A program made the translations under genes and the position numbers. Source: Orbicella franksi (taxonomy: Eukaryota). Taken from it: a stretch of DNA of 64,000 bases. Below, in pieces: positions 11,401 to 62,000 of the stretch. How positions within the stretch are numbered: the stretch's first letter is position 1; each line of letters starts with the position of its first letter. The stretch spans positions 31,806,001 to 31,870,000 of the forward strand of contig OZ116700.1 in the NCBI GenBank assembly GCA_964199315.1. Direction: 5' to 3'. The notes beneath the pieces are model-generated. The model was not told the origin of the DNA and made no database searches. It saw only the letters and a list, made by a program, of their open reading frames with translations.

Positions 11401-14400
11401 CAAATATCAAAGTGAATTCAAGTAAAAAGCAATTCTTAGTCATTACATGTATCAGCAGACAGTATATATATGGCTAGCGTTGTCTGCTCAAAGTTACCAG
11501 TGATCTGCAATTCTCGTCTTGCACTAAAGTTTATCAGAGTATTTACTCTGATATGTGCATAAAAATCAGGACTCAAAATGGCATCCCCCGCTAGTTGGTT
11601 GTGCATGTATTACTGCTGTTACTGTTTACTGTACATACACTGCAGTATGGAAAGAGCCAATACAGTCTTTTTTATTGGATCATTGTGCCATGGATGCTTA
11701 ACTTCCTACAATAATTTCAAATTGCTATGTGTATTCTAACTTCACTTCACTTTTATTCGTACGTTATTATTAATGATACTTTTACTTGGTGCAGATATCA
11801 CAACAAGCTGATGCAAAGGAAGAAAGTGAGAGAAATCAGTCGAGAAAGGCTAAGAGTTTGGTGCAGGAAACCAAAGACGATGAGGGCCAGAGGTGAGAAA
11901 ATTTACAAATAGTTGTGTATTCACACAGATAACTATTTGTCAACATGTACATTTAGTATTGAAGATGTCACCGAAATACTGTATGGTGATCAAAATTACT
12001 CACTGGATGAACTATTTCTTGTTATGATCAGAGATACAAACTTGTATATTAACTGTTTCATAAGTTGGTAACTGTTTAATAAATGTGTGATTACATAAAA
12101 GAAAACTAAACTTATGAGGACAAGCAATTACATTCAGAAGATGAACAGCAATTTGAGGTCTAAAAATGACAAAAGTCTGATTTAGAAAAATAACCAAGTT
12201 GGCTTCTCTGTAGATGAAACAAAGTCAAACAAGCAAGAACTTAAAGGAAAAAGATGACTACAAAAAATCAGAAAAAAAAATAATCAGGAGAGGCTTGGCA
12301 GCCTTGGCTCTACAGCATGTATATCATATGCAGTAGTTGATACAGCAGATTATCATCTTGTGAAAAGGAAGATTACACGCCTCTGAAGTCGCCACTTTGA
12401 AATACATTAATTCTAGATATTTTACTTCACAGGGGAAGAAGCGAGCAGGAAAAAAGAGATAACAGCAGCTCACCCAAGCAAATGGTTAGTCATGAGGGGA
12501 TATATATTGATAACTGATAATATTGTAGAAGTATCTCATGAATTTGTATGGTTGAACTAACTCTACTGAAGTAGCTGTAAATGTGTTTTTCTGGATCATA
12601 CAAAGAAAACAGAAACAAGAAATAACCCATGTAGAGTGCACATGTGCTTTTTTGTATGTTTTATTGTCATTTGATATTACAATTTTTTTTTTTTTTTTAC
12701 AGAAACGATTCACAGTTCCAAGGTTTGCTTCTAAAGAAGATTCAAGGCGGAGAGCTGTACCAGTGTACTGTGCTTCTAATGAGGAATCTGAGATGGTGAG
12801 ATCTCTTTAGAGTCTTGTATGAATCTGAAGATTTCTACTGCTACTCAAAATAATTTGAGTATTACTCCCTTTCAATGACAATGGACTAGACAATGTATGA
12901 ATAAATGTGAAGACTTGTATCTCTCAATTACATCTGTACAATGGGCTGGGTAAAATATTAGACTCTTGCAGGCATTCAGTGAGTTGGGTGAAGGGTGAAA
13001 AATGGCGCACAAAAGAATAGGGGAGAAGCACAGGGCAGGAAGGCAAGAGAACTCCATCATCGCAGCAAGCCTTTGTCTCCTTTATTTCACTTTATTTCAC
13101 ATGAGGCACTCCAACTAACTGAATGCCTGGAAGAGTCTGCAGCAATACCGGTATTTAGGCCGTTCTATTCAGATGAATTGGGTTTTGCATTCTTATTGTA
13201 TGGATTGCCTTTTCACTCAGATACCATTCACAAACCTTGGGAATTACCTCTAGGCTTGGAATGTAAGATTCACACCTTGTTTCTTGTTATTAGCCTCAAA
13301 GAAGAACTGTGTCCAGAAAAATTAACCAGGAGCAGATCAAGATTGATCGCAGACTTGCTTGGGAGCGTGTGAAGGAGCTGCTTGGTGGTGATGAAGATGA
13401 CGAGGAGGAGGAAGAGGCTACCAGAGCTTCCAAATCAGGTATATACAGATAGGTACATGTACTTGTACCCCGCAAGGTGGATTTTCCCCTCACTTTCTGC
13501 TCTGATCAGATAAGAAAGGGAATCACTGTCTCGCAGGGTAGGTACTCATGGGCTTCCACAGGGGCAAAGCACCTGCCAAACTGACCGGATGTGAGGAGTA
13601 TTTTGCCTACCTGGTTTGACCATCCAGAGGAAAGTTTTTCTTATAAAGAAGTTCTTACAAAGAAGTTCAGTTCAAAAAGGTTTGTGAAAACCTGTTGCAT
13701 GTGAAACACCAGTTGCTCTCCCGCTGAAAACGCGAATGAAACCCCTGGGTACTCAAGCAAACTAGGAAAACCTAGCAGAGTGCTGGGATAACCAGTGAAT
13801 GACAAGCATCCCATCGAAGGGGAGTAACAGTGCTTATTGTTGCTTCATCCTAAGATACACTTCTGCAGTCAGCAGTCTAATATTGCACTATCCGGACATC
13901 TCAGTGAACCAATCAAAATGCTCTTTTTCATGAGGCCCAGTTTGGGAATTACTAATGAATACATCAAGTGACATGTCCAAATGGTTTCTTACATTAATAA
14001 CAATAATGATCATTGTGGTGCTTTTCTAACAGGTGATGTTCCTTTGAATCCCTCTTCAGGTACAACAGCAGCTTCATCAACAGCTGCTGGTACTTCCACC
14101 TCTTCATCGTTATTGAAGATCCCTACTGCCGGGGCTGTGACCAGTGCCGGGACAATAACCACCACCACCACTCAGAGTCTCATCACCCCAGCGCCTTCTT
14201 CTGGCGTCCCACAGAGGACCACAGGGGTTCAGGGAGTCCCTGTGACAAATGCCCCATTTTTGCAATCCCAAGGTACAGCGGTGCCCTCATTACAGTCTCA
14301 GCAAGCGTCAGGGCCCGGGCTATTGGCTAATTTGTTAAGTAATCCAGGATCATCAAAGAATACCTCATCGGCAGCAGGATCACAAACAGCTACTCCAGAA

Positions 14401-16794
14401 CAAGCGCAGTCAGCTGTTACTGCCCAGACATCTGGAGTAGTAAATTTATTAAAAACTCCCACAATAGGATTACAAGCAAACGTGTCACTAACATCAACTG
14501 CAACTGCAACCCAAGGTCCTGCAGGTTTCCAGTTCTCATCTTCTTCGTCTTCGTTTGGAAATTCGCCCTTTGTAAAGCCAGCAATATCAAACCAATTAAC
14601 TTCATCCTCAGTTTCTTCTCACAAAAATACGTCTGACACCAACACCAGCTCAGCCCAACAACCAGGCTTTAGTTTTCCTGCAATTTCTTCTTCGGGGCCT
14701 GGCCAGGCAGGGTTTACATTTGCAGCTGCTAGTGGCGCCCCAAATGCTGTTAGTTTAGGTCAAAATTCAACACAAAACACTCCTGGAACAAGCTTGTTTA
14801 ATTCTCCAAGTACTTCCGCTTTGGGAGCAGCTAGTTCTCAAAAACCTGTTACGTTGGCAGGTAACAGTTCAATTGCACCATCTCAGAATCCATTCGCATC
14901 TATTGCCAAGCCTACACAAAATAGTTCTGTGTCCAGTGCGTTGCCAGCACCGAGCGGTTTTGCCGGGCAAAGTTCAAACGCAGCTCAGAGTTCTTTTGGT
15001 TCAGTAGGCCAGAACAAGTTGGCATTTGGTGCCACAAACATGCAATCTGTACAAGGACAACAGAGTCAAAGCCCATTTGGTGGTACCCCCAGCACTATGT
15101 CGGGTTTCGGTTCAACGTCTGCGCAAAACACTTTTGGAGTTGCAGTTAGTAAAAGTTCTACGCAAAGTCCATTTTCCCAGGGTACGTTGGGAGCGCAGGC
15201 CAACCAAAACACTTCCCAGGGACCTGCCCAAAAAGCCTTCGGAGCACAACAGCAAAACCAGCAAGCTACTGCAAGTACTTTTGGAAAACCGTCCGGCAAA
15301 AGTACATTTGCGAACCTAACTAATACTCCAGGCAACTTTACGTTTGGTTCACAAGTCCAACAAAGTGCCACGCAGAATGTATTCGGAAGCCAGACAACTC
15401 AAAATGCGTTTGGACCTCAAGCAAATCAAAATACTAGCCAAAGTGCCTTTGGAAACCAACTTACCCAGAATGCCTTTGGAGCCCAAGCTACCCAAAGTGC
15501 TTTTGGAGCATCTTCAACCCAAAAGACAACTCCGTTCACTTTTGCCGCTCAGAACACTGTCCAGAACCCTTCCAACACACCTTTCGGTGGGTTTGGTAAA
15601 ACTGGTACCCAGAGTACTTTTGGGGCAGCGCTTTCCCAGAATACTGCAGCTCCCTCAGGTGGATTCAATTTCAGTGCTACCGGAAGTAACCCTGCACCTG
15701 GTGGTTTTAATTTCAGTGCAACTGGCAATAAACCCAATGGTTTTCAGTTTGGTAAGAGTGACATGTAGTTATTGTTTCCTTGGGATTAACTTCTCGTGTC
15801 ATTGAAGCGCTTGATACAGCAAGTGTGTTTTCCAATCGTTTTGCTAAAGTGCGTATTTTTGAACTACAATTACTTCTCGGGTAGTTTTTTTTTATTATTC
15901 TTAATTGCCTTCACATATTTGACATTTGACCAAAACTACCGAATGGCTATGGACGGATCTGATTTGCAAGGTCTTAAAAAATCTTCGCATTGTTCAAGGT
16001 CCTTGAAAGTCACAAATAAAAAACGCTACTCGTGGGGATAAGTGGGGTTTCGTCAGGGAAATCTCTTGAGAAAATGCCAGAGGCCTTCCCAAAAACTAAT
16101 CTGGCCTGAGAAGCGTATTTTTATCCTGCAAGTTACACGCAGAGCTGAGAGCTCGACGGAAAAATGTGTCAATCCTGTTGTCGTATCCTCAACTGCCTCT
16201 TTTCGTGAAGTTCATTTGAGTGTGTTGTTTCTGTAGGTGCAGCGGGAAGCAGCGGTAATTTTGGTCAATTTGGCCAAACAACTGCTCAGCCTGGAGGTAA
16301 GAATATTCTTATAAGATGAACAAATTGTAAAAACTCCTATCCTAAGCACATTCTTAACTATGATTCCACTCCCCTGATTGTGGAAATCTTCCACGTTAGG
16401 TGTGGTTCGCGTATGTTGAATCCCCTCTCAAAATGGCCTGCTTCTTTTCCCGCATGCTTCTCTCGAACGTCTTACGTGCAAGAATGTTGTTGTCTAGGTG
16501 TTGAAGGTCTGACCGAAGCCGAAGTTTTACCTCTTATTACTTCAGATCCATGATCGTTGTAAATCTTGCCCAATACTTTCGTCTCTTTCATCTCTCACAG
16601 CTGCGCCCGCAACACCTACACCCAGTGGTGGTTTCAACTTTGCTCCAGGGTCTGGTGGCATGCCGGGAAGTCCGTTTGCATCACCTGCGGCTGCGCCAAC
16701 GTTTGGCATACCAAGCACTCCACAAGGGGCGGGCAGCACGCTGACGACAAGATCGCGGGCTCGCTTAACGGCCCGACGGAGAGGCAAGAAATGA
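8428..16794 (+). CDS. POM121: Nuclear pore membrane protein POM121-like; exons 8428-8762, 9190-9384, 9821-9961, 10554-10785, 11180-11347, 11795-11892, 12433-12484, 12703-12795, 13294-13438, 14033-15751, 16237-16296, 16601-16794
   Basis: N-terminal transmembrane segment (VLAILGLVILTLWSLFGLFWSLLLVFTFLIYAY). POM121-type motifs PSTVKIASPD and NPCSRVTVLSALKESRKRSLVVEDEED...KRR. Long S/T/Q-rich FG-repeat exon (GFSF, GFTF, AFGA, GGFNFS) and a basic C-terminus ARRRGKK*. All 11 introns are GT-AG with consistent phases. Confidence 0.88.
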
Positions 16795-22567: not shown

Positions 22568-22810
22568 CGGGGGGAGGGGGGGGGGAGGGGCATACAAAAA
22601 GGACGGGGGTGCTCGTAGTACCTTTTAAGGGTTGAAAAAGTAGTTTTGGAACCTCTTAGGGTGCTAAACCTCAAAACGTCCACAGCTGGAGCTTGTGCGG
22701 TATTGAGCCGAAACATTTTGACAGGAGCAGGAGATAATGTGTTATGTAAGCATTGGTGCCTGTAGCTTAGGGGAGAATAATGTTTCAAGCCACGCCCACA
22801 AAACAGGATC
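22568..22810. mobile_element. Fragment of a non-autonomous DNA-transposon-like repeat with a G-run terminus
   Basis: The G-run, ACGGGGGTGCTCGTAGTACCTTT and TTCAAGCCACGCCCACAAAACAGGATC all recur in 36447-36927. Confidence 0.6.
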
Positions 22811-23565
22811 ATCAGGCCAGATCGAAGAGATTGGTAATGATACGTGTACACTTGCATTCTGTCTACCTTACATTTTATTGAAAGAAATTCTGGATGGGGT
22901 TACCTGAGGGAAAAAAAATTGACAACTGACAGATACCCGAATCGAAACCTTAACAACTGACAACTGACATTTGTAGTCAGATTTACTGACAACAGACCAA
23001 AGGCTTTATCCATTATTATTCCTTTGCAATTCATCAAAAATAACTATTGTTCGGTTGAAATAACATACACAACATTAACTAATTTTGTTTTTTAGATTTA
23101 TACCTGTTTGTTTATTCGCAGAAAATACGCGTTAGTTGTTAGTTTTTAATCCGCCCATTGTGATCTTTAGTTTTGTCTGCGTGAATAAAACACGTCACTT
23201 CAATGTCTAGCCTGTCATTTGATGTCCAAATTGATTAAATCGCGAGCTAGTTGTGTAAACCGTGGGCTCGAACTCAAAGTAAAACGCTGCAAATGCTTGA
23301 GTCTCCAAGGTCGGCATGCCAATCCCCTTGAAAAATAGGAATAAACGGAGTGTCTTCAATCTGTACCGAATCAGTTGCCAAAATCAATAGCACAAACAGC
23401 CGTCAATTGAGCGTTTTATATGCCTATCTTTCGTAGACAAAATTGATTAACCCGAGAGTTTCCAGAGCCGCCCTTCATACGAATCTTATATTAGGAACGT
23501 AAAGAATGGTTTACACAGCAGCGCGACGAATCCTTACACAGGAATGCAGAAGCCACTACATATAA

Positions 23566-23601: not shown

Positions 23602-25054
23602 GCAAAAATCCGTGACGTGATGCATAAACCGTGACGTACTCCTTTGATGTGAAGAACGGTCAATCGACAGCTTACGTTTTACAGATTTCCCGTCCGTTTT
23701 CATCACAATATCATATTCACTTGAATTCGACTCTCTATTTGTTAGCTATTGCAGCTTTCAAGTAATTAATTTATCAGCTAGTCAAAAAGGACACTCATGC
23801 GCGGCCTATTTTCTGTTGTAGTCCGAGAATATATGAACAGAGCCTCAATTTACTTGTTTGTTCTGAAAACAACTTTCTAAATGAGCCATTTACAAACCAC
23901 ACTCTATGTGTTCAATTTTACCTGCAACATTCTTTGCAGCTGCCTTGGGCCTCGTATGTTTCCGTCAGTCGTCTTCGCCATATTTCCATGTATGTTTTCC
24001 TACCATCTTCGTTATCTGATTTCGTGAGTTCCGCGCTACAGTGACACATAATGAAAAAAAAACAAGGTTGTCATTGTATATCTTTGAGTTACCCTCAGTC
24101 TACTAATTTCTAAATTCTGTGGTAAACTGCGTCGCAAAAATCGTGTTGTATCTCTCACAGTGAGCTTAAAACAATTGACAATTGAACATGTTGTGAAAAA
24201 TTCGCCGCGGCCGGTTCAATTTCGAGACTCAAAATTTAAGCCGTTTGGAACATTAATGTCGAATTCTAAATCCGCAAACTATTCTGTTGATAATCTGTCT
24301 TACTTAAAGATTATTTCAGGTTTAAACGACATCAAAACTCGACTAAAATTAATATTTTAGTCAGAATCATCGATCAGTAAAAGTCATGCAGCGGTGGCGA
24401 ACAAGAACTGACAAAAACCTCTTTTCGCAAAAGATTGTATGTTAAGAGACAACAACCGTCTGCTTCCTGTAAATGAGATCACTTTGAATATCAAACAACT
24501 CAATGACATCAAAATGTTTGAAGAATTGTTTTCTCTTGGATTATATTTCATTCGAAGGATTTTGAATAAACGAAATGAGCATCGGAGCACTGATGAAAAC
24601 TAACTCTGAGCCATCGCCTATGCTTGTTGAGTAAAGTCAGTTGCTATACTCTTTACCTTTCGTCCATTACGGTCAGGTGTTTTCCGCTGTATATATACAA
24701 ACTGCCTTTGTTCAAAAAGGCGACTGCAATTCCCTTTACACTCGCCTTTCCTGAAAGCCTTCTTCTTTCACTTGTCGATTTTGTCTAAAATGGTAGTCAT
24801 GTTGATAAAAAAAGAACTGTCGGAGTCAACAACCATAGGGAAATCGACAAACAACTAACTTAGAAAAGAGTAGATCTCAAAACGTCACCGAAACAAAGCA
24901 GACGGGAAATTAGCATACGCAAATGAAGTGTATGCGATATGGAGAGGGTGATTCCTGCTAATTTAAGCCACGATATCGAGACATATGGTACTTTACAACG
25001 ATAACAATCACATGCCCAGTTTCCCTTCTTCGTTTTTGGCTCTTTGCTGAAACT

Positions 25055-25135
25055 GTGAGATTTTTTTTTGAAAACCTGAAAACCTTAAAACTGAAAACTG
25101 GAAAAAGCTGAAAACCTTTAAAGATTTGAAAAATC
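25055..25135. repeat. Short degenerate minisatellite, (GAAAACCT/GAAAACT)n
   Basis: CTGAAAACCTTAAAACTGAAAACTGGAAAAAGCTGAAAACC array. Confidence 0.6.
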
Positions 25136-25880
25136 GAAATGTTATCATGATCAGCTCTGTTGTTGGTTTGTCTTCGACGAAATTACGTTGACGATAATGG
25201 TGGATGATCACGGACTGTTGATCTGACAGTGTATTAATTAATGATCAATAATTCACCCAGTCAGGCTGTCATTAATTACTCGTCGCATCCGGTTTCATTT
25301 TTATCTTTTATTACATGTCGGTTGAGTACTCCTCAGTACAATCAAAATTTCTTCCTTTAAAACACTTTTTACCGCCCTACCCTCTCCTCTCCTCCCCTCC
25401 CCTCTCTTCCTCTCCGCCCCCCGCCCCCCCCCCCAAACGAAAAACAATCATGTGCGTGAAGTTTTTAGAGATAAAAAATGTGCAGAGTCAATCCGCGATA
25501 CACTCATTCAGGAAACTCAAATTCGTCCTTTCAAAGTGTTTTTATTTTCAGTGGCAGTGGCACAGAAGATCCCTATAAATGCTGAAAACGAGAGGTTGAA
25601 CAGTTTGTGAATTTTCTGTATGCGCCTGCAATAAGAAGGAAACGCGGAATACGAATTAGACCCATGCCTTCATCAGCAGCCGCGATTAGCGGTAGCACTC
25701 CATGTACTAAAAGATTTAGTTCACGTTGTTTTCCCTCTACACGTTTTTAAGAAATAAACGGTAGGAATCATAAGCAAGGAGATTTCTCCAGGCTTCAGTC
25801 TTGGTTGATCAGCACATCTGGATGATTTAATTTTGATTTGAAGTTCGAATTCTCAAGATTAAATCGAAAGTATCGCAGTC

Positions 25881-27302
25881 ATGGACGGGACTATTGTGCG
25901 CCGTCTGGGATTTGTTGACATACTTGTTGCATCAGTGTTCACTGGAGCATTCTTCTTTATAGCATTACTGCTGTACCAGCGAGCCAAGGAACATCCAATG
26001 AATAGTCTTCTAAGAAAAGCTCATAGAGTAGATGGCTTTATCCAGAAGCAACTGGCAAAAAATCTTTACCGAGAAGACTTCGATCCGCTTCCGCCTGTAA
26101 TGGGAGAAGGCGATGATTTGTATTTACTTGAGAAGTGTGGCAGTGTAATGGAGCGCTACGGTTTCTTTTCAGTCGAGGTAACAGGAACTGAACAGGACAT
26201 TGATGTGATGGTTTCTCCGAAGATGTTTGCCGTTCGAGACTTGGATGTCGACGAAACACGCACACCCGTGGGTTTTGTTTGGGTGCGAATGAGCAACTTG
26301 TTACAGCAAATAGGAACACGAACGTCGGATCTGCTCGAAGTGTTAAAGGAAGCGAATCAACAGTTTGTAAGCGCAAGCGCGATATATCAGCATTTTCTAA
26401 GGATTGCACAATCCAGAAGTGAAGATCTTGACTTCCACGTTGTGAAGAACGAGCCGGCAGTAACATTCAAAGCAAAAGAATTGCACCAGGAGCGTTATGG
26501 CTATATGAGAGTTATTGATGTTGCGGTGTCCTTGACCTTCTCTGCTTGGCCTAATGTGGCAACAGAATGGTTGAATCGCGCGAACAGAGAGTCGCACCTT
26601 CTTAGCATCGGTACCATTCAAAAAATCGCAGGAAGTGGATGCCATTTAGTCTACAAGCCATCAGGTTTATCTGAAGATCCTGAACTAGACTGGAGGTTTT
26701 CATTCTCCAAAGCAGAGAGAACATTGCTTCAGTATCACAGTGATAAACACGCGCTCAAGCTTTGTTACATCATGCTAAGGTACGCATACAAGAAACACTT
26801 GAAACCGAGGTTGGATACAAATAAGGTTTTAGCATCGTATTATCTGAAAACTTTGTTTCTATGGCTCGCAGAGACAGAAACTGGGTTTGATTACTATAAT
26901 CTAGATGATCGGCGACTAGGCGGTCTGTTTGAGTTCATGGTAAAGAAACTTATAGATTCTTACAAGAAACAATTGCTGCCTCATTACTTTATTCGTCAAT
27001 GGAATCTGCTTCGGGACTTCGCGAAAGAAGACCTGAAACAAGTGCTAGATTTCTTGGAAGATCTTTTGCAAAATAGCAAAGATTACGTCACGTACATTCG
27101 AGATACACGGAAGTATGTTCCACCGCTGGCCAAACAAAATGGAGGACCATACAATGAACTTCTTATGATTATTGATGAGTCTTACACAACATACCTCCTA
27201 ACTCAAGTACTCGTTATTGCAACTTCCACCTTTGCATCTCTAGTGTTTGTCAAGTGTGTGCTAAATCTGTTTTCTTTAGACCTAGCCCTATGCTCATTGT
27301 AA
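25881..27302 (+). CDS. Mab-21/cGAS-like receptor (cGLR) nucleotidyltransferase, 473 aa, single exon, with N- and C-terminal hydrophobic helices
   Basis: Activation loop CGSVMERYG (G87-S88), DIDVM (D106, D108), third acid in VIDVAV (D213). Mab-21 motifs GCHLVYKP, WRFSFSKAERTLL, SYYLKTLFLW, LPHYFIRQWNLL. Hydrophobic segments at about aa 11-32 and 436-465. Confidence 0.92.
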   Translation: MDGTIVRRLGFVDILVASVFTGAFFFIALLLYQRAKEHPMNSLLRKAHRVDGFIQKQLAKNLYREDFDPLPPVMGEGDDLYLLEKCGSVMERYGFFSVEVTGTEQDIDVMVSPKMFAVRDLDVDETRTPVGFVWVRMSNLLQQIGTRTSDLLEVLKEANQQFVSASAIYQHFLRIAQSRSEDLDFHVVKNEPAVTFKAKELHQERYGYMRVIDVAVSLTFSAWPNVATEWLNRANRESHLLSIGTIQKIAGSGCHLVYKPSGLSEDPELDWRFSFSKAERTLLQYHSDKHALKLCYIMLRYAYKKHLKPRLDTNKVLASYYLKTLFLWLAETETGFDYYNLDDRRLGGLFEFMVKKLIDSYKKQLLPHYFIRQWNLLRDFAKEDLKQVLDFLEDLLQNSKDYVTYIRDTRKYVPPLAKQNGGPYNELLMIIDESYTTYLLTQVLVIATSTFASLVFVKCVLNLFSLDLALCSL

Positions 27303-28212
27303 TTTTATAACGGAAACCTTTTGATTTGAATGTGTCTTATTATATTGTACTTGTGGATTATGAAATGGAATACTAACTAAGATATATTGCACTTTTTATG
27401 AATCACTTATCTTAAAAGAGAGCAACAACAACAGTCTTTCACTCCAGAGTCTCCCTGTTCGAGGGCTTCCAATGTATTCTACATTTGTTTTTTCAAACAC
27501 AAAAGCAACACTGTTTTCCTTAAAGATGCTATGTTACGGTTTGCGTATCCTGAAAAGTTTAGCCTAAATTTTTGAAGCTAAGTTCATCATTTGTAATCCG
27601 TGTTAATCTTCTCCATCCTTAACCATCCCTGTTCCGTTATGGTTTATGATCATCTCTTTGGTGTTTTTACTATCTTAGTAAACTGCTATATTCAGGTTTC
27701 CATGACTGAGCTCCCTTAAAATTGAAAATATTAACTTGCCCAAAATACTAATTACAGTATTGGAGGAGCTTGAGTAAAATATTGTAATTGTCACTGGCCA
27801 GCAATAAATAGCGAAGTTTCTTAAAGGGGTTAATTTTAATCCCGCGAAACAGTCAGTTAAATTTGCCTACTAATGAGAATGCTTACTTTCTGTACAGCAA
27901 TAGTTAAGTAGTTAACATATCTTATGGAAATAATTCGAAACATATCTTTCTTTTACTGAAACGTCCAGCTAGTTCAGTCGGCTTAATGGGAAGTACTTTT
28001 CAAAACTCTTTCCTGTCGTTTGAAATATCTTCAGAAAGAATAAACTAAAAAAGTCATATCAACTTTTAAGACTGATATGAAGCCATTGTTCCCATCGTAC
28101 GTTTATGGTCAGTCAGGCTTCGTAAAAAGTGCCAGCTGAAGTGCGTGAAATACGTCCACAGTCAAGCTCAAAGCGGGCGTGGTAGAAAGCCAAGAAAGTA
28201 AATATTATAACA

Positions 28213-29739
28213 CTAAATTGAATTGGAATCAATTCTGTTCTTAATGCTGATTTCATAAGATTTAGGAACAAGCACAACACCAGGGTGACCTTCCAGATCG
28301 GGCAGTGGTTTTCCCGGCGCACACTCAAACGTGAACTGATGCAGGAGCCTGGCGAAGACTAAAAACAGCTCAGTCTTGGCAAGTGACTCCCCCAGACACA
28401 CGCGTCGACCGGCGCTGAAAGGTAGATAGCTGCGAAATCCCCACGGACCCGAAGCTGAAAACTTTCCTTTGGCATCAAGAAAGCGCTCCGGTTGAAACAC
28501 ATCTGGTTTTTCCCATTCCTCCGGATCATGATGGATCGCCCACAAATTCGTCATCATCATGGTATCTTTCGGTATGTTATATCCCCCCAGAGTACTCTCC
28601 CGCGTCGACTTGTGGGGGATGGACAGAGGCGTGGTTGTCGCAATGCGAAGCACCTCTGCCACTGTGGATTCCAAATAAGGAAGATTGCCACGGTCATCGA
28701 GACGAGGCTTGCGATCTCGACCAATGACTTCGTCAATCTCCGCATGGACGCGCGCTTGGATGTCTGGGTAATTAACCATGTACGCAAGTAACCATAGCAA
28801 CGTTGCTGTCGTGGACTGAATGCCGGCGTTGAAAACGTCATTGACGATCATTAATAAGTGATCTTCAGACAGCAGCTGTGAGATTTTTCCATCTTCTTCT
28901 TGCGCGTCATAATACGCCTTCAACAGCGCGTCAGTCAAGTCGTTAATTTTTATCCCGTCCTTGTCTAGGTCGCCATCAAACTTTCTTTTGTGTTCGCGGT
29001 ATTTCGCATTCAGTACAAGGTCCCGCAATTCTTTCGCCTCGCGAAGGATTCTTCCTTCTTCGATCGGAAGATAGCGCAACCAGGGCATCATTTCTAAGAT
29101 ATTGAATCCTTTAAACAAACGAACAAAGTGATTGTTGTACTTCATTATCAGCTGAAATTCTTCGTCTTCAAGATCGTAACTTTGCCCGTAAACGAGAGCG
29201 CAAATGACGTTCAAAACCATGAGGCTGATGTCGTCGGTAGGATCGACTGCCTTTCCCTGATGGGCGGAGAATCTTTTGAACAACTGCTCTACTTCATCGT
29301 TTATCTTTCCCTCCAAGTGCTTGAGTCCACTTCCGTACATGCGCAGTGCAGAATGGGTGAGTTTCCGCTGCAGGATCATAGTCGGTGACAAGTCCGCAAA
29401 GAATATGTCCTTGGCTTCTCGGGTGAGATAATCTCCGATGAACGTGCGGGGTCTCCCGGCAAAATCGTCCTTCTTGGACAGCAAAGCCTCACGGGCCAGA
29501 CTAATGGAATTGACTAGGATACACCGCTGACCACCTGGTAAATACAACGTGAAGATCTTCCCGTATTCCTTTGCGAGGTCGGTCACGGCCAAATGAATCG
29601 GCTTACCCACCAACTGAGTTAAGTTACCAATCAGGGGATAGGGGCGGGGGCCCGGTGGAAGGTTTTTTGGTGAAGGGACGAGAAACAACCGCCAGCCCAG
29701 TACGAGGAGAATAATCAAAATGGCCGCCTCCAGGATCAT
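28213..29739 (-). CDS. Cytochrome P450, clan 2 (CYP17/CYP1-like), 508 aa, uninterrupted CDS; paralogue A
   Basis: N-terminal anchor, PPGP hinge, I-helix NAGIQSTT, K-helix EVLR, PERF, heme motif PFSAGRRVCLG. Splice acceptor 20 nt upstream of the ATG. Confidence 0.95.
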   Translation of the reverse strand: MILEAAILIILLVLGWRLFLVPSPKNLPPGPRPYPLIGNLTQLVGKPIHLAVTDLAKEYGKIFTLYLPGGQRCILVNSISLAREALLSKKDDFAGRPRTFIGDYLTREAKDIFFADLSPTMILQRKLTHSALRMYGSGLKHLEGKINDEVEQLFKRFSAHQGKAVDPTDDISLMVLNVICALVYGQSYDLEDEEFQLIMKYNNHFVRLFKGFNILEMMPWLRYLPIEEGRILREAKELRDLVLNAKYREHKRKFDGDLDKDGIKINDLTDALLKAYYDAQEEDGKISQLLSEDHLLMIVNDVFNAGIQSTTATLLWLLAYMVNYPDIQARVHAEIDEVIGRDRKPRLDDRGNLPYLESTVAEVLRIATTTPLSIPHKSTRESTLGGYNIPKDTMMMTNLWAIHHDPEEWEKPDVFQPERFLDAKGKFSASGPWGFRSYLPFSAGRRVCLGESLAKTELFLVFARLLHQFTFECAPGKPLPDLEGHPGVVLVPKSYEISIKNRIDSNSI

Positions 29740-49375: not shown

Positions 49376-50908
49376 ATGATTTTGGAAATCGCCCTAGTTT
49401 GCTCCTGTGTTATGCTCATCATATTCCTGATCCAACGTGCTCGTGGACAGAAAGCGTTATCTCTCGCACCTGGCCCCAGTCCTTACCCGCTGATCGGCAA
49501 CATGCTTCGTCTGGCGGGAAAACCTGGTCACCAGGCAATGACTGAGCTCGCTGAGGAGTATGGGAAAATCTTCACGCTCTACCTACCCGGCGGTCAGCGA
49601 TGTGTCGTAATTAATTCAATAGATCTGGCGCGGGAGGCGCTGCTCACCAAGCGAGACGATTTTTCAGGAAGGCCTTCAACCTTCATCAGCGGTTATCTGT
49701 CTCGCGGAGGCAAAGACATAATTTGCGCCGACTTCACGCAAACCATGATTCTTCTACGAAAGATCGCACACTCTGCACTGCGCATGTACGGAAGTGGCTT
49801 GCAGCACCTGGAGGGGCTGATCTGTAGCGAAGTTAGCCAATTAGCGAAACGAATCTCCGCGCACGAAGGCAAACCTCTTGACCCCAAGAACGACCTTCAA
49901 CTAACAGTTTTGAACGTCATCTGCGCTGTTGTTTATGGTGAAAGCTATGATATCGAAGACGAAGAATTTCAGCGCATAATCGAGTACAATGATGATTTTA
50001 TCAGGCTATTTGGAAGCTATCACATTTTAGACTTGCTTCCGTGGCTGCGATTTCTCCCCTTGGAAGACGTGAAAACTCTCCGCAAATCAAGAGCCATCAG
50101 AGATGACATCCTGGGTACTAAATACCGGGAGCACAAGAAGAGATTCGAAGAGGATAACGCGAACAATAACTTCGAGATGGAGGATTTGACCGATGCGCTG
50201 TTGAAGGCTTACCACGAAGCCAAGGAAGAAGATGGAAAAGTCGAGCAGCTGTTGACTGAAGATCACATTGTGATGACTATGAACGATGTTTTTAATGCTG
50301 GCCTCGAGACAACGGCCACCACCCTGCGATGGCTTTTTGCCTACATGGCCCACTACCCAGAGGTCCAAGCGCGCCTTCATGCTGAGCTGGATGATGTCAT
50401 CGGCTGTGGCCGCATGCCGTGCTTGAAAGATCGCGGGAACTTGCCATATTTGGAGTCCACCATTGCCGAGGTCCTCCGCATTGCAGCCACCGTGCCTCTG
50501 TCGCTTCCTCATAAAGCAACTTGCGACACGACACTTGGAGGCTATGATGTGCCAAAGGACACCATGCTGATTACAAACGTGTGGGCTATGCATCACGACA
50601 AAGACGAATGGGAGAAGCCAGAAGTGTTTAACCCCGAGAGGTTCTTGGACAAAGAAGGGAAGTTTGGCAGCTCAGAAAGAAAAGTTTCTGCCGCTGGAGT
50701 TCGTAGCTATCTGCCTTTCAGCGCTGGAAGGCGTGGTTGCCTGGGCGAGTCGCTGGCTAAGACCGAGATGTTTTTAATCGTTTCCAGGTTCCTACATCAA
50801 TTCAAAATTGAAAATCCTCCTGATAAACCGCTTCCTGATCTGACAGGCCGTGTGGGCGTTGTTTTAATGCCTGGACCCTTCGAAGTTTGCATCAAAGAGA
50901 GATTTTAA
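49376..50908 (+). CDS. Cytochrome P450, clan 2 (CYP17/CYP1-like), 510 aa, uninterrupted CDS; paralogue B
   Basis: N-terminal anchor, APGP hinge, canonical I-helix NAGLETT, EVLR, PERF, heme motif PFSAGRRGCLG. Colinear with paralogue A. Confidence 0.95.
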   Translation: MILEIALVCSCVMLIIFLIQRARGQKALSLAPGPSPYPLIGNMLRLAGKPGHQAMTELAEEYGKIFTLYLPGGQRCVVINSIDLAREALLTKRDDFSGRPSTFISGYLSRGGKDIICADFTQTMILLRKIAHSALRMYGSGLQHLEGLICSEVSQLAKRISAHEGKPLDPKNDLQLTVLNVICAVVYGESYDIEDEEFQRIIEYNDDFIRLFGSYHILDLLPWLRFLPLEDVKTLRKSRAIRDDILGTKYREHKKRFEEDNANNNFEMEDLTDALLKAYHEAKEEDGKVEQLLTEDHIVMTMNDVFNAGLETTATTLRWLFAYMAHYPEVQARLHAELDDVIGCGRMPCLKDRGNLPYLESTIAEVLRIAATVPLSLPHKATCDTTLGGYDVPKDTMLITNVWAMHHDKDEWEKPEVFNPERFLDKEGKFGSSERKVSAAGVRSYLPFSAGRRGCLGESLAKTEMFLIVSRFLHQFKIENPPDKPLPDLTGRVGVVLMPGPFEVCIKERF

Positions 50909-56000: not shown

Positions 56001-59000
56001 GATGTCAGCTCATATTGTACATGTATCTGCTTGACATCATGTATTCTAGCTGACTGGTAATGTGATCAACAGTTTTCAGTGGACATGTAGCTGTAATAGT
56101 GAAGTCCATTGTCGATTGTTATGAAGTGGTTTTGCCGTTTAAGCATTTAGATATATTTCCATGTGTATTGTAACTCAATACAAGAAATGATTCACAGATT
56201 TGATACAACTTTTTTGACAGTAATTGTTTTCTTGAATCTTATTATTTGAGTTACGTAAGCTGTTGTTCTAATTATTAAATACATGCATCTTCAATCATCC
56301 TGTATTTCAAAAATTTTGTTTGTGAATTGTCAAGTTAACCCTACACTGGAATATACAATCATGTCGTTTCATTTTTTGTGCAATTAGATATATTTAAGTT
56401 AAATGCGTGTACCAGCTGTCATTTCATGAGCAAGTATGCTGTTTACACATATACACAGTATCCTGGTAACAAAATGTCAACACTGGATTTGTATGATTAA
56501 GACTCTTTTAATGCCCATGACGTTTACATGAAATATGCATGACCCTAAAGTTCTGTACTTCTAATACAATTGTTGTTAGTGATTGTTTTTTTTCAAAGTT
56601 TAATAGACCTGGCTGTAGCACTAACAGCAGAAAGCACAATATTGTTAGTTTGTATTGAGTACGAACAGCTGAATTATTAAATCATAAGTTAAATCAGTTG
56701 CTGCTAGGGTATAAAATTTCATTTGTGATCTTCAAACAATGCTTGCCTCTCTTCAATGGCTAGTTGTGTATGACCCACTGCTGGCCACTCCAGAGAAATT
56801 CAATTATAGTTCACTTTTACTAATCAAATATTCTTGTAATACATTGTATAACTCATACTCTAAGCAGTTATGATTGTAATTTATCATTTTGCAGAACTGC
56901 TTTGACTCTAAGCTGGATTTGTCAAGAAAGAAAGGTAGAATTAATAAAACTATAATAAGTGAATAAGTGAAATAATTATTATTTCAATGCACTACTGTGC
57001 AAAAAATGCCCTGAGCTAAGCAGGGCTTGAAAAAAATGCGGATTCCAGCTTGCCCTTTGAACAAGCAGCTCTCAAATTTCAGCTTGTCCTAGCGAGTTTA
57101 CTTCTTCTATTATTCAGTTGGCAGATGACTTACCTGGGCCCTTGCCCATTGCCCATTGGGCAACTGAGAATGTAAAATTACTTGCCCAGATGGAAAATCT
57201 ACTTGTCCCAGACAACTGGATGGTACTTTTTTCGAGCCCTGCTAAGACTACAGTGTATTTGAATCATAGCAATCTACATCATATATATTATGTATATGGA
57301 AACTACTTGTATACATGTACACATTAATCAAAACGTATTCTTACTAATAAAAGAATTGCTTTTTATATTTACAGTAGTCGGTGATCGTCAGCATGAACCT
57401 TGGTATCAAAGCTTAAGGCAAGATTTGCCAACAGGGAACCAGGCTTGCCTACAGCAAGGAAGCGTTGAGAGCTCAGATGATGAGTGGTCTGACCTCTCTT
57501 TTTACGATTTGCCAGATACCTTGAAGGTCAGTGAGATTTGATGTTTTGCTTTTAAGATGTTTTACATGTTTATACGTGTACATATATGTAACTGGAATTA
57601 AAAGGGTCAGTAGAATTATGATATTATATTTATTAATTAACTTTTATATAGTGCTTGTACGTGTACAATGCTGTCCAGAGCACTTCACTATCAAATCCTA
57701 GAAAATTCAGTCATCAGCGATTGTTTTCAGTTTAAAGTTTTAATGCAAAGAGTTAATTCATGATGGTCCAGTCTTTTGACAGGTATTTGATCCAGTTTAG
57801 ATAAAATTAATTATTACAAACTTTTGGACTTATTGGTAGACTGTCATTATGGTCAGTAAACATATATATTTTTTTCAGGATTCTATTCACAAATCAGTTC
57901 ACCCTGCAGAATTCACCATTCAGTCGCACATGGTATCCAGACCTCCTTATCATGCTACTGCAGAAGGTACAGTGTACAGTGTTAGTTAACCTTTACTGAA
58001 ATAAATAAGCAATAATAATTGTGCTTTTTTACTTCTTCTGGCTTGGATATTCAAACTATAAATCAAGTATTATTTTTACAGTGTATTACTTACAATAATT
58101 TTACCCTTACTCAGATCACATGTACCAATAAACCATCGATGAAATTATTGGTCAGTAAAATAATTTTGTCCATAAAGTGAAAAAAGAAAACCACCGACCA
58201 TTTTTGACAGTAGGTCATCTTCAAAAAACCTTCGGTATTTTTTTATTTTTTAAAAATAATTTGGTTATTTATTTACATGTCAGAGAAATGAAATGTGTTA
58301 ACACCAAATTTTGTGATGAACAAATATCTACAATGTACATTACACCATACATGTACTTTAATTACCATGTGACTGATTTATATTTTCACAGCTCACCGAG
58401 CTCACACATTCCTGGACAGTGAGGTATCTAATCCTTTCAGCTTAGTGATGGGAGACTCAAGCAATCCATCCTCAGGATGTCTTCCCTCAGGGACTGCACA
58501 TCTCAGTGGCAATCAAAGTACAGAGGGCAATGCAACTGGCAACAGTGCAACAGTTAATGAAGGAATGCAGGACGCGGTTGTGACTTCATCTAAACCGTTT
58601 GATGGTAGCTTGTACTACAGACAATCCAATGTGATGCTTAATGGTAAACCAAGGAGAGAGATTCCAGTTGACAATTGTCAGCACAATGGGCACTACGAGT
58701 CCAGTTACCCTCTTTCCACTAGATCTTCCACTCAAGTTCAAATTAAAGTCCCTCCTGTACTAGTCTCTTCTGAGGTATCCACACATAAGCCAGTTATAGC
58801 AAGAAGAAATGTCAATGGAGTAGTGCCAGGTAACAGAGAAAATGCCAGTCATTTGGAAAGACTCAAAAAGAGTCTTTCATCAAGTGGAAGCCACACAATT
58901 TCCAGTTCTCAGGAGGCATACGCCAATAAATTTATGCAAAGATCAAGGGAATTGTTACATAAAAAGGAAAGGCACAAAAATGATGCAGAAAGAAAGAAAG

Positions 59001-62000
59001 AACATTCTCCTAAGTCAGTTTCATTTGCAAATTCTGTAAAGGGCATTAACATGCCAAACGAAACAACTGTGCCAGGGAAAGAAGAAGGAAGAGGTTATTT
59101 GAATGGGTCTGTTACACCATGGAAGCCGAAGATACAGAGCAATGTGGTACTGAGTAGTGGCCTAGGGCAAAACCTGATTGGATGTGGATTACAAAACAGT
59201 GAGATTAAAAGAAGTTTTGATCTGAAACCACGGCAACAGTCAACAGTAGAGAGGGAAAGCCCCTTTGAAAAGAAAGACACCAAATATGGTGATGTGGGTG
59301 ATGTCCCTCTGCCACCCTCCCCTCCCACTAGAGATACTAATAGAATTCCAGATTGCTGTGATTCACAGCAGAGCTCTGGTTCTGTTCAAATCTTGTCGCT
59401 GTACGACGAACACAGCTTGTTTGCTTCAAATTTCTCCAGGAATTCTGGCTCACTGCCCAGACAATCAAATGTCAGATTGGAATATGATGGACGTGAAACT
59501 TTGCATTCTAGTAGAGCTGTGTCTCTAGCACCAAAGAGGGATCAATTTCTCCAACAGTCCAACAGTATAGTGGATGTGACTGCCAATTGTAGTTTGAGGT
59601 CGAGTGTACAAAGCAGAGATGCTAGTCTCACAATTGAAGAGTTACTGAGCAGTGGAAGTGTGTACTCAAGTCCAGAAAGTTCACCTCCAACCAAGGTGAC
59701 TCAACCTCTGTTTGACAGGAACAGCTATTGCAGCAAGAGAGAACACTCACTTGATGATTATGTTGACGAAAAAGGAAATGTACTGCAAGATATAAGGTAC
59801 AGTGCGTGTTTTGATAATTGCTATTTAATAAAAATAACTTTGCACAGTTCAAACTCGCTTATCTCGAACACTTGTCAAGTCACTTTACCTTGGCTATACT
59901 TTTTCATTAACTTATGATCTGCTATCTCGAGCCCCCTAACATGTGGAACTATTTGTCCTTCCCCTCAAGAGTTCTTGATAGCAGGGCTCAACTACTTCAT
60001 CAATCAGTGGCTAAGGTTTGCTTTTGTTCCTTTTTTTTCTACATGTAGCTTGACAAACTCATTTTCAGTTGATACATCACAAAGAATTTCCTCTGCACTT
60101 TGGGCCATGAAGCTTATGGAAGCCACGCGTTCATCTAGCCCAAACTCTTATCAAGAGCTGCTCATTAAGGTACGGTGTACGATAATCTCTAGTAAGTAAT
60201 TAGTTAATAAACAGTAGGTGTACTTGAGCTTCGTTGTTTGATTTGTGGAAAGGAATTTTTAGATCTCATGTAATTTTTTTGCATATGTTTCTTTAGGGTC
60301 GCATGTTTCGACGCTGGTACCAGAAAACAAGGCTAAAGAGACTCATTAAACAGGAGGATGAGGTCAAGTTGCAGAGGTATCTTAGTTTGTTGCTTCTGTA
60401 ATTTTCTGTCAATCTCTTCAGATAATAAGTCATTAACGCCCAAGTTGCTAGTGGAGGGAAGGTGCCTACGAAGCCCGGGGGCTGCAACCGCAGTCACATC
60501 CCCAAGGCGCTAGAACACCCGACTGGCCTGCCCAACCCGCAACCAAGCCACGAGCCCCCCACGCCAAGCCCCCTACAGGCACCCGTCACACTCAAACCAG
60601 ATGGCATTGGTGGAAAATAAATGAATAAATAAATAAATAAGTAAATAAATAAATAAATAAATAAAATAAAATGCTGAAAAGAAAGGGGGGGATAGGGAGG
60701 GAACGCCGAGAACCGCTAAACTATAATTCAATCCACAACGCCACACTAACAGAGCGATGAACACACTGCGAGCACATGGGACGACAACACATGTACTAAC
60801 CAAGTATACCGCTGGACAATGTCAGCCCCAGGGCTCTCACGACCATATGACTGTTGCAAACGCTACAGAAACGCACCAAACGCTAAACAAACGCTAACAG
60901 ATGGCCAAGGCACTAACAAACGCCTACAAAAAACGCTACTGACCAGACTGGCTCCTGGTCATAAACTATGTAAAATTTCATTGAAACTATATCAAACGCT
61001 ACAAAACGCACCAAACGCTAACCAAACGCTCACAGACGGCCAAGACACTGACAACCTCCTATAAAAACGCTACTGACCAGACTAGCTCCTAGTCGTTAAC
61101 TATGTTAAATTCCATTTAACTATATTATAATGTGTATGAAATACATTTCATTAGACAACTACTAAACAGCGCAACTCTGTTGGTCTAAATTTGTTTTGGT
61201 GCAAGGTTTAACAAACTAATTTGAAATGTGTTTGCCCTCGTTTTGAGAGGTACAAGGCTCATGGTTAGTGAGCTCGTCTCTGGATCAAGTGGTTCAGGTT
61301 CGAACCCTGGCCGGGGACATTGTGTAGTGTTCTTGGGCAAGACACTTTACTCTCACAGTGCCTCTTTCCACCCAGGTGTATAAATGGGTACATGTACATG
61401 TACTGGCAAACTTCATGCTGGGGATTAAGCCTGTGATGGACCACATGCAGCTTCCCACCCAGTGGGGAGTAGATTAAATACTCCTAGTCACTGCATGCTA
61501 TGGAAACTGGGATACTGTAGGCTCTGGCATGATGGGCCCCTTGGGTTGTATGCAGACCTGACTTTTTTTTGTTTCACACCAGAATTAATCATGATTCAAC
61601 TTTTGAAATAGTTCCAAACCAAAACCAAATTTAAGCTGTGAGGGAAAAAAACAACGAGGAAAATTAATTTTGTCTTTTTGTCTCTTTTGTACAGTGCTGT
61701 GACTTTCTGGCAAACAGAGATGCAACAAAAATGCTTTGAAGCTTGGAGAAATGCAAGATATGCCCAACAAGAAAAGGCTGACAAGCTACGGAGGAAGCAA
61801 ATGTTGCAGAAAGGGATAAGTGCATTACGATTTGCTGTCAATCAGCACAAACAGTCAGCTGTTGAGGTACAGACCAGGACGAGTGCAAGGATCATGGCAA
61901 AGTACTGGCTGAAGGTATGAAAAGAAAAAAAAACTCTCAAAGGATCGCTCCTCGTTCCACCCCTAATCTCCTAGACAGGGAAAAATGTGTAAAACATCAT

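Follow-up and report, generated by a model that had tools for sequence, protein, structure and literature searches.

A stony-coral cGAS-like receptor with a probable transmembrane helix at each end appears to belong to an old, conserved clade

The window analyzed here, a 64,000-nucleotide stretch of Orbicella franksi DNA, contains a stony-coral gene whose single open reading frame (ORF; 25881 to 27302, stop codon included) encodes a 473-amino-acid cGAS-like receptor (cGLR) with an apparently complete active-site signature and a transmembrane-like hydrophobic helix at each end. The gene and all features described below lie on the forward strand. From its sequence relationships, the protein appears to be one branch of an old, conserved clade of cGLRs flanked by transmembrane (TM) segments. 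This clade is apparently undescribed, and full-text searches of the literature turned up no relevant paper on cGLRs that are transmembrane or membrane-anchored. The initial annotation had proposed a doubly tethered enzyme that may sense at an organelle or symbiosome membrane or respond to a non-nucleic-acid cue, and this interpretation is partly supported by our analysis, namely in the cGLR-type active-site signature and the hydrophobic helix at each end. One correction is that the protein is no isolated oddity, since it belongs to an older TM-flanked clade and has a paralogue with two helices at each end in the same genome.

An in-frame TAA (25860 to 25862) lies 21 nucleotides upstream of the ATG. 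Over 25704 to 27616, contigs from two polyA RNA-seq runs are collinear with the DNA and show no joints, and the orthologous loci in five other genomes are all uninterrupted single ORFs (5/5). This confirms the earlier proposal that the coding sequence is intronless, the transcript evidence being collinearity at the level of contigs. The RNA contigs begin at 25704, which sets the approximate start of the 5' untranslated part of the transcript (25704 to 25880), and a 1718-nucleotide contig from two runs (25899 to 27616) extends the 3' untranslated region from 27303 to at least 27616. The transcript was present in 14 RNA runs; no reads fell on the gene in the portion (about 12% each) of raw-read runs X23 and X24 that was read. 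Because RNA depth was zero over the intergenic interval 24961 to 25551, the signal on the gene does not represent DNA carry-over. Rfam gave no match over 24000 to 28300.

Two Pfam domains were detected above their cut-offs: the Mab-21 nucleotidyltransferase domain (PF03281; residues 123 to 284, 26247 to 26732; E 2e-10, 41 bits) and the HhH/H2TH-like Mab-21_C domain (PF20266; residues 293 to 390, 26757 to 27050; E 1e-13, 51 bits). The residues named in the initial annotation were all found at the positions given there, namely the NTase GS motif G87-S88 (26139 to 26144), D106-I107-D108 (26196 to 26204), which provides catalytic acids one and two, and the third acid, D213 (26517 to 26519). They do not vary among 15 orthologues or across the wider clade, and a profile built from 89 relatives matched them, at the sequence level, to the GS, E-F-D and V-D-I motifs of human cGAS, D213 being aligned to the aspartate of V-D-I. 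Furthermore, K259, R272, S274, S276, E279, S319, Y320 and K323 occupy what we take to be the nucleotide-contacting positions of cGAS. Most of these positions are kept clade-wide together with the motifs: residues 274 and 319 are S or T throughout, and residue 276 is mostly A beyond the orthogroup of this protein. The active-site signature thus seems complete. One caution about catalysis comes from the loop between GS and DxD, which exceeds that of cGAS by 6 residues (by as many as 17 in paralogues) and carries a clade-specific G-F-F motif.

An AlphaFold2 (AF2) model computed with 15 close orthologues had a pLDDT of only 40.8 and was discarded; the alignment of 89 sequences gave a mean pLDDT of 87.8. 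In this model, long helices at residues 11 to 36 and 422 to 463 lie outside the part of the protein (approximately residues 38 to 403) that can be superposed on cGLR structures. A basic "spine" helix (residues 39 to 62, 25995 to 26066) comes directly after the first hydrophobic helix (TM1) and starts the cGAS-like fold; the first 15 residues after TM1 include 4 K/R and 1 D/E, and the fold alignment to Sp-cGLR1 begins at residue 38. Foldseek ranked Sp-cGLR1 first (E 7e-16, TM-score 0.76), followed by MB21D2, cGAS and Cv-cGLR1, with a probability of 1.00 to 8GJY, 7LT1, 8GJW and many cGAS entries and TM-scores by target of 0.7 to 0.77. The same ranking was obtained from a fold search of AFDB Swiss-Prot and from two profile searches of PDB sequences, in which Sp-cGLR1 reached E values of 3e-37 and 6e-59 and human MB21D2, the second-best match, 6e-23 and 2.5e-49. 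This is in good agreement with the cGLR identity assigned initially.

The best match, Sp-cGLR1 from Stylophora pistillata (PDB 8GJY), synthesizes 3'3'-cUA upon activation by dsRNA (Li et al. 2023, PMC9980059). Like our protein, it is of stony-coral origin, has the two-lobe Mab-21/Mab-21_C fold and the GS, DxD and D motifs, and lacks a zinc-thumb insertion. However, the two share only about 21% identity, and Sp-cGLR1 is a soluble protein of 376 amino acids without hydrophobic ends and without the longer GS-to-DxD loop and its clade-specific aromatic motif. Human MB21D2 (PDB 7LT1) similarly has a complete putative active site, but it is soluble and about 16% identical. The fold and catalytic residues also align with those of human and mouse cGAS; unlike cGAS, the coral protein has neither a zinc thumb nor a disordered basic N terminus. 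Through its N terminus, human cGAS can bind lipids and so attach to the plasma membrane, a peripheral contact, whereas the contact predicted here would be made by integral helices. The pI of the domain is 6.7, and the median of the TM clade is 8.3, compared to 6.6 for 64 other cGLR domains. Bulk domain charge was uninformative as a proxy for nucleic-acid binding and gave no sign of a lost basic surface.

Both ends of the protein exceed the classical membrane-helix threshold of 1.6 on the Kyte-Doolittle scale (window of 19 residues), with peaks of 2.42 at residues 14 to 32 and 2.19 at residues 443 to 461; the next best peak is 0.99. Together with the position of the AF2 helices outside the cGLR-superposing region, this bears out the claim that hydrophobic helices flank the Mab-21 fold. 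The N-terminal helix (residues 9 to 32, 25905 to 25976) is a probable signal-anchor TM segment, and the C-terminal one (residues 439 to 465, core 443 to 461; 27195 to 27275) a probable TM anchor. When residue values of the Hessa scale are simply summed, the N-terminal segment scores -2.2 kcal/mol and the C-terminal segment about +1.1 kcal/mol. Because the latter value is marginal and K458 and N462 lie inside the segment, the C-terminal end could instead form a hairpin or an anchor at the membrane interface and not span the membrane. K458, C459 and N462 are invariant among orthologues, as are D467, C471 and S472 in the short, acidic and highly conserved C-terminal tail (L-D-x-A-L-C-S-L; residues 466 to 473, 27276 to 27299), which contains no K/R. 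CaaX-type prenylation of the conserved C-S-L was considered and rejected, the cysteine being at -3, not -4, in most orthologues. The tail (8 to 12 residues) is shorter than the roughly 30 residues allowed for tail-anchored proteins, but these have a sole TM segment; since an N-terminal hydrophobic helix is also present here, co-translational targeting is more likely than tail-anchoring.

Full-length orthologues with 66% to 98% identity and conserved gene neighbors were found in other stony corals, and the hydrophobicity of both ends is retained in every one of them and in the wider clade. The dN/dS ratios are 0.09 to 0.15 for the core, 0.14 to 0.41 for residues 1 to 38 and 0.04 to 0.43 for residues 436 to 473, which points to purifying selection that is strong on the core and weaker yet clear on both ends. 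The Stylophora orthologue (RefSeq model XP_022808525.1, 66% identity) is also 473 amino acids long and has both hydrophobic ends. Li et al. 2023 (PMC9980059) list it in their supplementary file 2, where its only annotation is Mab-21 at 108 to 388, and it is not in their table of tested constructs.

In a tree computed with the TM segments cut away, 20 TM-flanked proteins and one fragment formed a single clade with a support of 100/99. Its members have 1+1, 2+1 or 2+2 helices (N-terminal plus C-terminal) and include the 2+2 paralogue from the same genome, proteins of a hydrozoan (Clytia) and of a bryozoan (Watersipora), and proteins of Desmophyllum, a non-symbiotic cold-water coral; at both of these positions, related proteins have helices of still higher hydrophobicity. 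Each coral has two paralogous intronless genes. Catalytic residues are retained in all members bar one degenerate protein, so that the TM-bearing clade containing our protein does not look like a non-catalytic one; P0041, which a quick tree placed within the clade, has lost them. P0109 was rejected as a member: it groups elsewhere in the tree, and its helices, two in number and both N-terminal, look like an independent acquisition. A protein search with the clade alignment found no new members, and one with the own-genome paralogue did. The occurrence of the clade in Desmophyllum, in a hydrozoan and in a bryozoan argues against a symbiosome-specific role.

Taken as a whole, the explanation that we favor, and to which we would give an even chance, is that of a membrane-integral cGLR that has a cytosolic domain and synthesizes a cyclic dinucleotide. 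Sequence architecture, conservation, transcription, fold family and clade membership are observed here, whereas membrane insertion, orientation, catalysis, product, ligand and organelle are predictions. The helices at about residues 9 to 32 and 439 to 465 would hold the Mab-21 domain on an internal membrane, facing the cytosol, with the short N- and C-terminal tails towards the lumenal or outer side. Since the active site appears complete, the most likely reaction would be that of its relatives, in which two NTPs are joined into a cyclic dinucleotide in a Mg2+-dependent manner. The genome encodes three STING proteins with a PF15009 ligand-binding domain (contig C2, 135 to 138 bits), one of which may read the product. 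Tethering would confine synthesis to a membrane surface, possibly that of the ER or Golgi where STING sits, and would keep the ligand-sensing face, which starts with the spine helix continuing straight from TM1, near the bilayer.

An unlikely competitor is a membrane scaffold or nucleotide-binding adaptor comparable to MiD49/MiD51 or ITPRIP/TMEM102, which would make no second messenger. In the mitochondrial MiD proteins, a membrane anchor at the N terminus precedes a cytosolic NTase-fold domain of the Mab-21 superfamily, a layout that the N-terminal hydrophobic helix found here resembles, but they lack both the C-terminal helix and the catalytic triad. Kinship with them was rejected because the profile match was barely detectable (E 0.02 to 0.4 for MiD49 and MiD51, and up to 1.6 among their chains, from the clade profile versus 3e-37 to Sp-cGLR1), and the likeness looks convergent rather than orthologous. 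MB21D2 has no known ligand or product despite its full active site, which would fit an adaptor, and a TMEM102 cluster was found at 0.91 and rank 15 in an Atlas feature search. Also known are vertebrate Mab-21 proteins predicted to start with a signal or TM region (DANGER D1A-C, D2B and D3A; among them ITPRIP, ITPRIPL1/2 and TMEM102), and none is an established synthase (PMC1784063). However, hydrophobic helices at both ends are not reported for the ITPRIP/TMEM102 group. ITPRIP and TMEM102 were compared by fold ranking, in which neither they nor the MiD proteins are among the best 30 AFDB Swiss-Prot matches. Furthermore, the motifs and most of the nucleotide-contacting positions are kept from stony corals to the hydrozoan and the bryozoan, with the low core dN/dS given above. 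This counts against a pure scaffold, which is not expected to keep such positions. A further caution for the favored explanation is that most cGLRs of the published screen showed no activity unless the right ligand was supplied (Li et al. 2023, PMC9980059).

A second alternative concerns the orientation. With the N terminus in the cytosol, the Mab-21 domain would be lumenal (ER/Golgi) or extracellular, and would act on the nucleotides found there or as a surface receptor. The initial annotation had left the topology open on the basis of flanking charges. This stands for the protein taken singly, in which the bias across TM1 is modest (about +3 versus 0 to +1) and an R7-R8 pair at the N terminus resembles the n-region of a signal sequence, and the parity of the 1+1, 2+1 and 2+2 arrangements alone does not fix the side. 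It no longer stands for the clade as a whole, whose charges favor a cytosolic domain. Indeed, the domain-side flank carries 2 to 5 K/R and 0 to 2 D/E in all members and is the more basic one in 23/23 members examined, the TM1-TM2 loop of members with two N-terminal helices is short (5 to 17 residues) and mostly acidic, and the N termini of these members (20 to 108 residues) are hydrophilic and without a signal peptide. Because of these features, a cytosol-facing Mab-21 domain is the favored prediction across the clade. In addition, the 473-amino-acid protein contains no N-x-S/T sequon for N-glycosylation and only three cysteines, an odd number, in its Mab-21 domain, and both the ATP/GTP substrates and the ligand-binding domain of STING are cytosolic. 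We thus consider the reversed orientation improbable.

Finally, a soluble cGLR whose hydrophobic ends are buried or oligomerization helices or a gene-model artifact would accommodate the borderline Hessa value of the C-terminal segment and a deposited S. pistillata model without the N-terminal helix (PFX13870.1, 400 amino acids), but it is very improbable, as both ends lie within one ORF preceded by an in-frame stop and covered by RNA contigs, are conserved as hydrophobic in every full-length orthologue with dN/dS below 1, fall outside the region superposing on solved cGLRs, are matched by still more hydrophobic helices in relatives and are present in XP_022808525.1.

Beyond the favored explanation of a membrane-integral synthase, we tentatively entertain, as possible rather than expected, a more far-reaching one in which the clade represents ancient cGLRs of cnidarians and at least one bryozoan that are active cyclic-nucleotide synthases, integral to the membrane and activated by the membrane itself or by a membrane-bound cue. 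Candidate cues would be a lipid, damage to the membrane or its curvature, or the membrane-wrapped organelles in which RNA viruses replicate. If this were true, the clade would constitute an arm of cGLR-STING immunity devoted to membrane surveillance and separate from the soluble sensors of nucleic acids.

To our knowledge, all cGLRs characterized so far, among them cGAS and those of Drosophila, oyster and corals, are soluble and cytosolic, and they sense either double-stranded nucleic acid or a ligand still unknown. If a conserved clade with an intact catalytic signature is embedded in a membrane by helices at both ends, this would extend both where second-messenger synthesis occurs, possibly right beside STING, and what cGLRs might sense. 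The two intronless paralogues per coral and the orthologues in the laboratory hydrozoan Clytia offer a concrete and cheap experimental entry point. Moreover, disease weighs heavily on corals, whose repertoires of cGLRs and STING proteins are greatly enlarged, so that these unusual cGLRs are of practical interest as well.

The window carries a 473-aa open reading frame (ORF; 25881-27302, +) with an in-frame TAA 21 nt 5' of its ATG and two Pfam domains over cut-off, the Mab-21 nucleotidyltransferase (residues 123-284) and the Mab-21_C lobe (293-390). This cGAS-like receptor (cGLR) stretch was present in 14 RNA runs, and in two polyA libraries the RNA contigs, analyzed at contig level only, were collinear with the DNA across 25704-27616, with no joint. 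The same two libraries showed a GT..AG intron (24036-24656) in the neighboring minus-strand transcript upstream (23921-24886, -). Depth was zero in the upstream intergenic region 24961-25551 in the polyA libraries, which excludes DNA carry-over. The gene drew zero reads in two raw-read RNA runs, of which about 12% each was covered. Orthologous loci in five other assemblies, including Stylophora pistillata (GCA_002571385.2) and Desmophyllum pertusum (GCA_029204205.1), are single uninterrupted ORFs. Their upstream neighbor is an Ion_trans-domain gene; S. pistillata keeps both neighbors, in the order ion channel (-), cGLR (+) and cytochrome P450 (-), while the D. pertusum locus retains the channel and another assembly, L017, the P450. 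The window cGLR is a real, expressed, intronless gene, the lack of an intron noted in the initial annotation being borne out by the collinear polyA contigs and the single-ORF loci.

The gene is convergent with an intronless P450 (28213-29739, -; Pfam p450, E = 1e-118), which holds the same position in S. pistillata and in a second coral; another intronless P450 lies at 49376-50908 (+; E = 1e-120). A ~180-bp interspersed repeat (27522-27718) lies in the 3' region of the cGLR gene. It has more than 3,000 candidate copies genome-wide (84-88% identity), extreme RNA-contig depth (11,000 and 92,000) and no Rfam match, and is suggestive of a SINE- or MITE-type element. At 22597-22990, RNA depth was high and reads joined opposite strands at 22615/22616-22810, suggesting a transcribed inverted-repeat or hairpin-forming element. 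Long ORFs of 595 aa (13981-15768, +) and 490 aa (58445-59917, +) had no Pfam match at E < 0.001.

When 1.8 billion representative proteins were searched, a gap separated the orthologues from the next hits, which likewise harbor hydrophobic helices at both ends (TM-flanked). Among 37 Mab-21 matches in the window's own genome, the best after the window gene was a second intronless TM-flanked cGLR of 527 aa (contig C4, 18357859-18359442, +; 763-2346 of locus L002), with two helices before and two after the domain (2+2) and the residues GSS...QDVDV...D retained. This paralogue has orthologues in several corals, Oculina and Montipora among them, and relatives in Clytia and Watersipora: Oculina patagonica (82% to the paralogue; 2+2), Montipora foliosa (73%; two N-terminal helices and a single C-terminal segment over threshold), the hydrozoan Clytia hemisphaerica (46%; 2+1) and the bryozoan Watersipora subatra (29%; 1+1), whose gene is located on a 64-Mb contig.

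A maximum-likelihood tree (75 rows, LG+C20+F+G4) was built with all hydrophobic segments removed. One branch (support 100/99, 200 of 200 bootstrap trees) separated 20 TM-flanked proteins and the short fragment P0038 from 10 other cGLR paralogues of the window genome and 44 representative cGLRs, and a quick tree of 91 rows agreed on this clade. The phylogeny thus places the window protein among TM-flanked cGLRs that retain the catalytic residues, its 1+1 orthogroup being sister to the rest. Indeed, all members examined except the degenerate P0041 kept the GS, DxD and D motifs and most of the positions that contact nucleotides; position 274 is S or T, and 276 is mostly A outside the window's orthogroup. 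A G-F-F motif within the extended GS-to-DxD loop is common to the clade. The relative P0109, which has N-terminal helices only, was placed elsewhere and apparently gained its TM segments independently. Five 2+1 paralogues from an ENA assembly (P0224-P0228), four of them on one 1.67-Mb contig, suggest a local tandem expansion of the clade.

We searched the PDB sequences with a profile built from the window protein and its nearest relatives. The best match was Sp-cGLR1, a soluble S. pistillata cGLR (8GJY; E = 3e-37), followed by MB21D2 (6e-23), cGAS (about 1e-18), Cv-cGLR1 (4e-16), MAB21L1 (1e-14), MiD49 (0.02) and MiD51 (0.4). An AlphaFold2 model from an 89-sequence alignment reached a pLDDT of 87.8 and a pTM of 0.85 (pLDDT 40.8 with orthologues only), and the proposed kinship with cGAS and cGLR structures was recovered by Foldseek, with Sp-cGLR1 first (E = 7e-16, TM-score by target 0.76) and MB21D2, cGAS and Cv-cGLR1 next. 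The superposition spans only residues ~38-403, so neither terminal helix (modeled at 11-36 and 422-463) is part of the fold. For an orthologue with 66% identity, the AFDB model matched end to end (1-473, TM-score 0.88). G87-S88, D106-I107-D108 and D213 are present as initially annotated and invariant across 15 orthologues. In the 89-sequence profile, the clade GS, DxD and D align with GS, E-F-D and V-D-I of human cGAS, and K259, R272, S274, S276, E279, S319, Y320 and K323 with VPK, WRLSFS, E and SSYHVK, which in cGAS are positions of nucleotide contact.

Alternatively, the protein could be a scaffold without catalysis, of the MiD or ITPRIP kind. MiD49/51 carry N-terminal signal or TM regions. 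Such regions have also been described in the vertebrate DANGER families (PMC1784063). In AFDB Swiss-Prot, the fold order was Sp-cGLR1, Sp-cGLR2, MB21D2, oyster cGLR and Nematostella cGAS, and none of TMEM102, ITPRIP or the MiD proteins was among the best 30 matches. We consider a scaffold rather unlikely.

A lumenal or extracellular domain seems less probable still. The initial annotation took the flanking charges to leave the side open, and those of the window protein are modest (13-residue N-tail, net ~0 to +1; domain-side flank, +3; acidic C-tail). Across 23 clade members, however, the 15 residues past the last N-terminal helix contain 2-5 K/R and 0-2 D/E, which by the positive-inside rule favors a cytosolic Mab-21 domain. 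In 2-TM members, the TM1-TM2 loop (5-17 residues) is mostly acidic or neutral, and the N-terminal extensions (20-108 residues) are hydrophilic, without signal peptide. The whole window protein has no N-x-S/T sequon, and its domain only three cysteines.

That the hydrophobic ends are something other than membrane segments is very improbable: a 19-residue Kyte-Doolittle scan gave only two peaks above the classical threshold of 1.6, at 14-32 (2.42) and 443-461 (2.19), the third-best being 0.99, and both ends are retained in the 15 orthologues (66-98% identity, nearly all 471-474 aa), in line with the helices initially proposed. With a simple Hessa-scale sum of -2.2 kcal/mol for 14-32 and about +1.1 for 443-461, the former is a strong TM candidate and the latter an acceptable one, which could instead be a hairpin or interfacial anchor. 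Pairwise Nei-Gojobori dN/dS was 0.09-0.15 in the core (residues 39-435), 0.14-0.41 at the N-terminal end (1-38) and 0.04-0.43 at the C-terminal end (436-473), indicating that both ends are under purifying selection, looser than the core. Such relaxation is typical of membrane anchors, in which the hydrophobic character counts for more than the exact residue. Conservation among orthologues is unusually high in the eight C-terminal residues, L-D-x-A-L-C-S-L (27276-27299), and at three polar or charged positions of the C-terminal helix, K458, C459 and N462. They are (nearly) invariant, beyond the needs of a simple anchor, and could serve for targeting, for acylation or for contact between helices.

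We give roughly even chances to the whole of the following chain: a catalytically competent cGLR would be anchored in an internal membrane, with the Mab-21 domain on the cytosolic side, and would make a cyclic dinucleotide read by a STING. Candidate receptors are the products of three STING ligand-binding-domain genes (135-138 bits each), in tandem within ~45 kb on contig C2 of the same genome (9042452-9087400, -). The doubly tethered enzyme proposed in the initial annotation is partly supported, by clade membership and by the conserved motifs and ends. The spine helix of cGAS is part of the ligand-binding platform. In our model of the window protein, the spine helix runs straight on from TM1 after a two-residue break, so that the sensing face would probably lie near the bilayer and a membrane-associated ligand is conceivable; the bulk charge of the domain was uninformative on the ligand.

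Li et al. 2023 (PMC9980059) catalogued 42 S. pistillata cGLRs, mentioned only ankyrin and death-domain fusions, and used "transmembrane" solely of STING. Their supplementary domain table lists XP_022808525.1, the orthologue from S. pistillata (473 aa, "cyclic GMP-AMP synthase-like"), with Mab-21 at 108-388; the synthesized and tested constructs do not include it. No description of a transmembrane or membrane-anchored cGLR turned up in our full-text literature searches. Members of the clade occur in a hydrozoan and a bryozoan, and also in a coral that lives in cold water without zooxanthellae, which makes a symbiosome-specific role unlikely as the ancestral function. Overall, the cGLR family itself is already known, and what is new is a conserved clade of predicted integral-membrane cGLRs.
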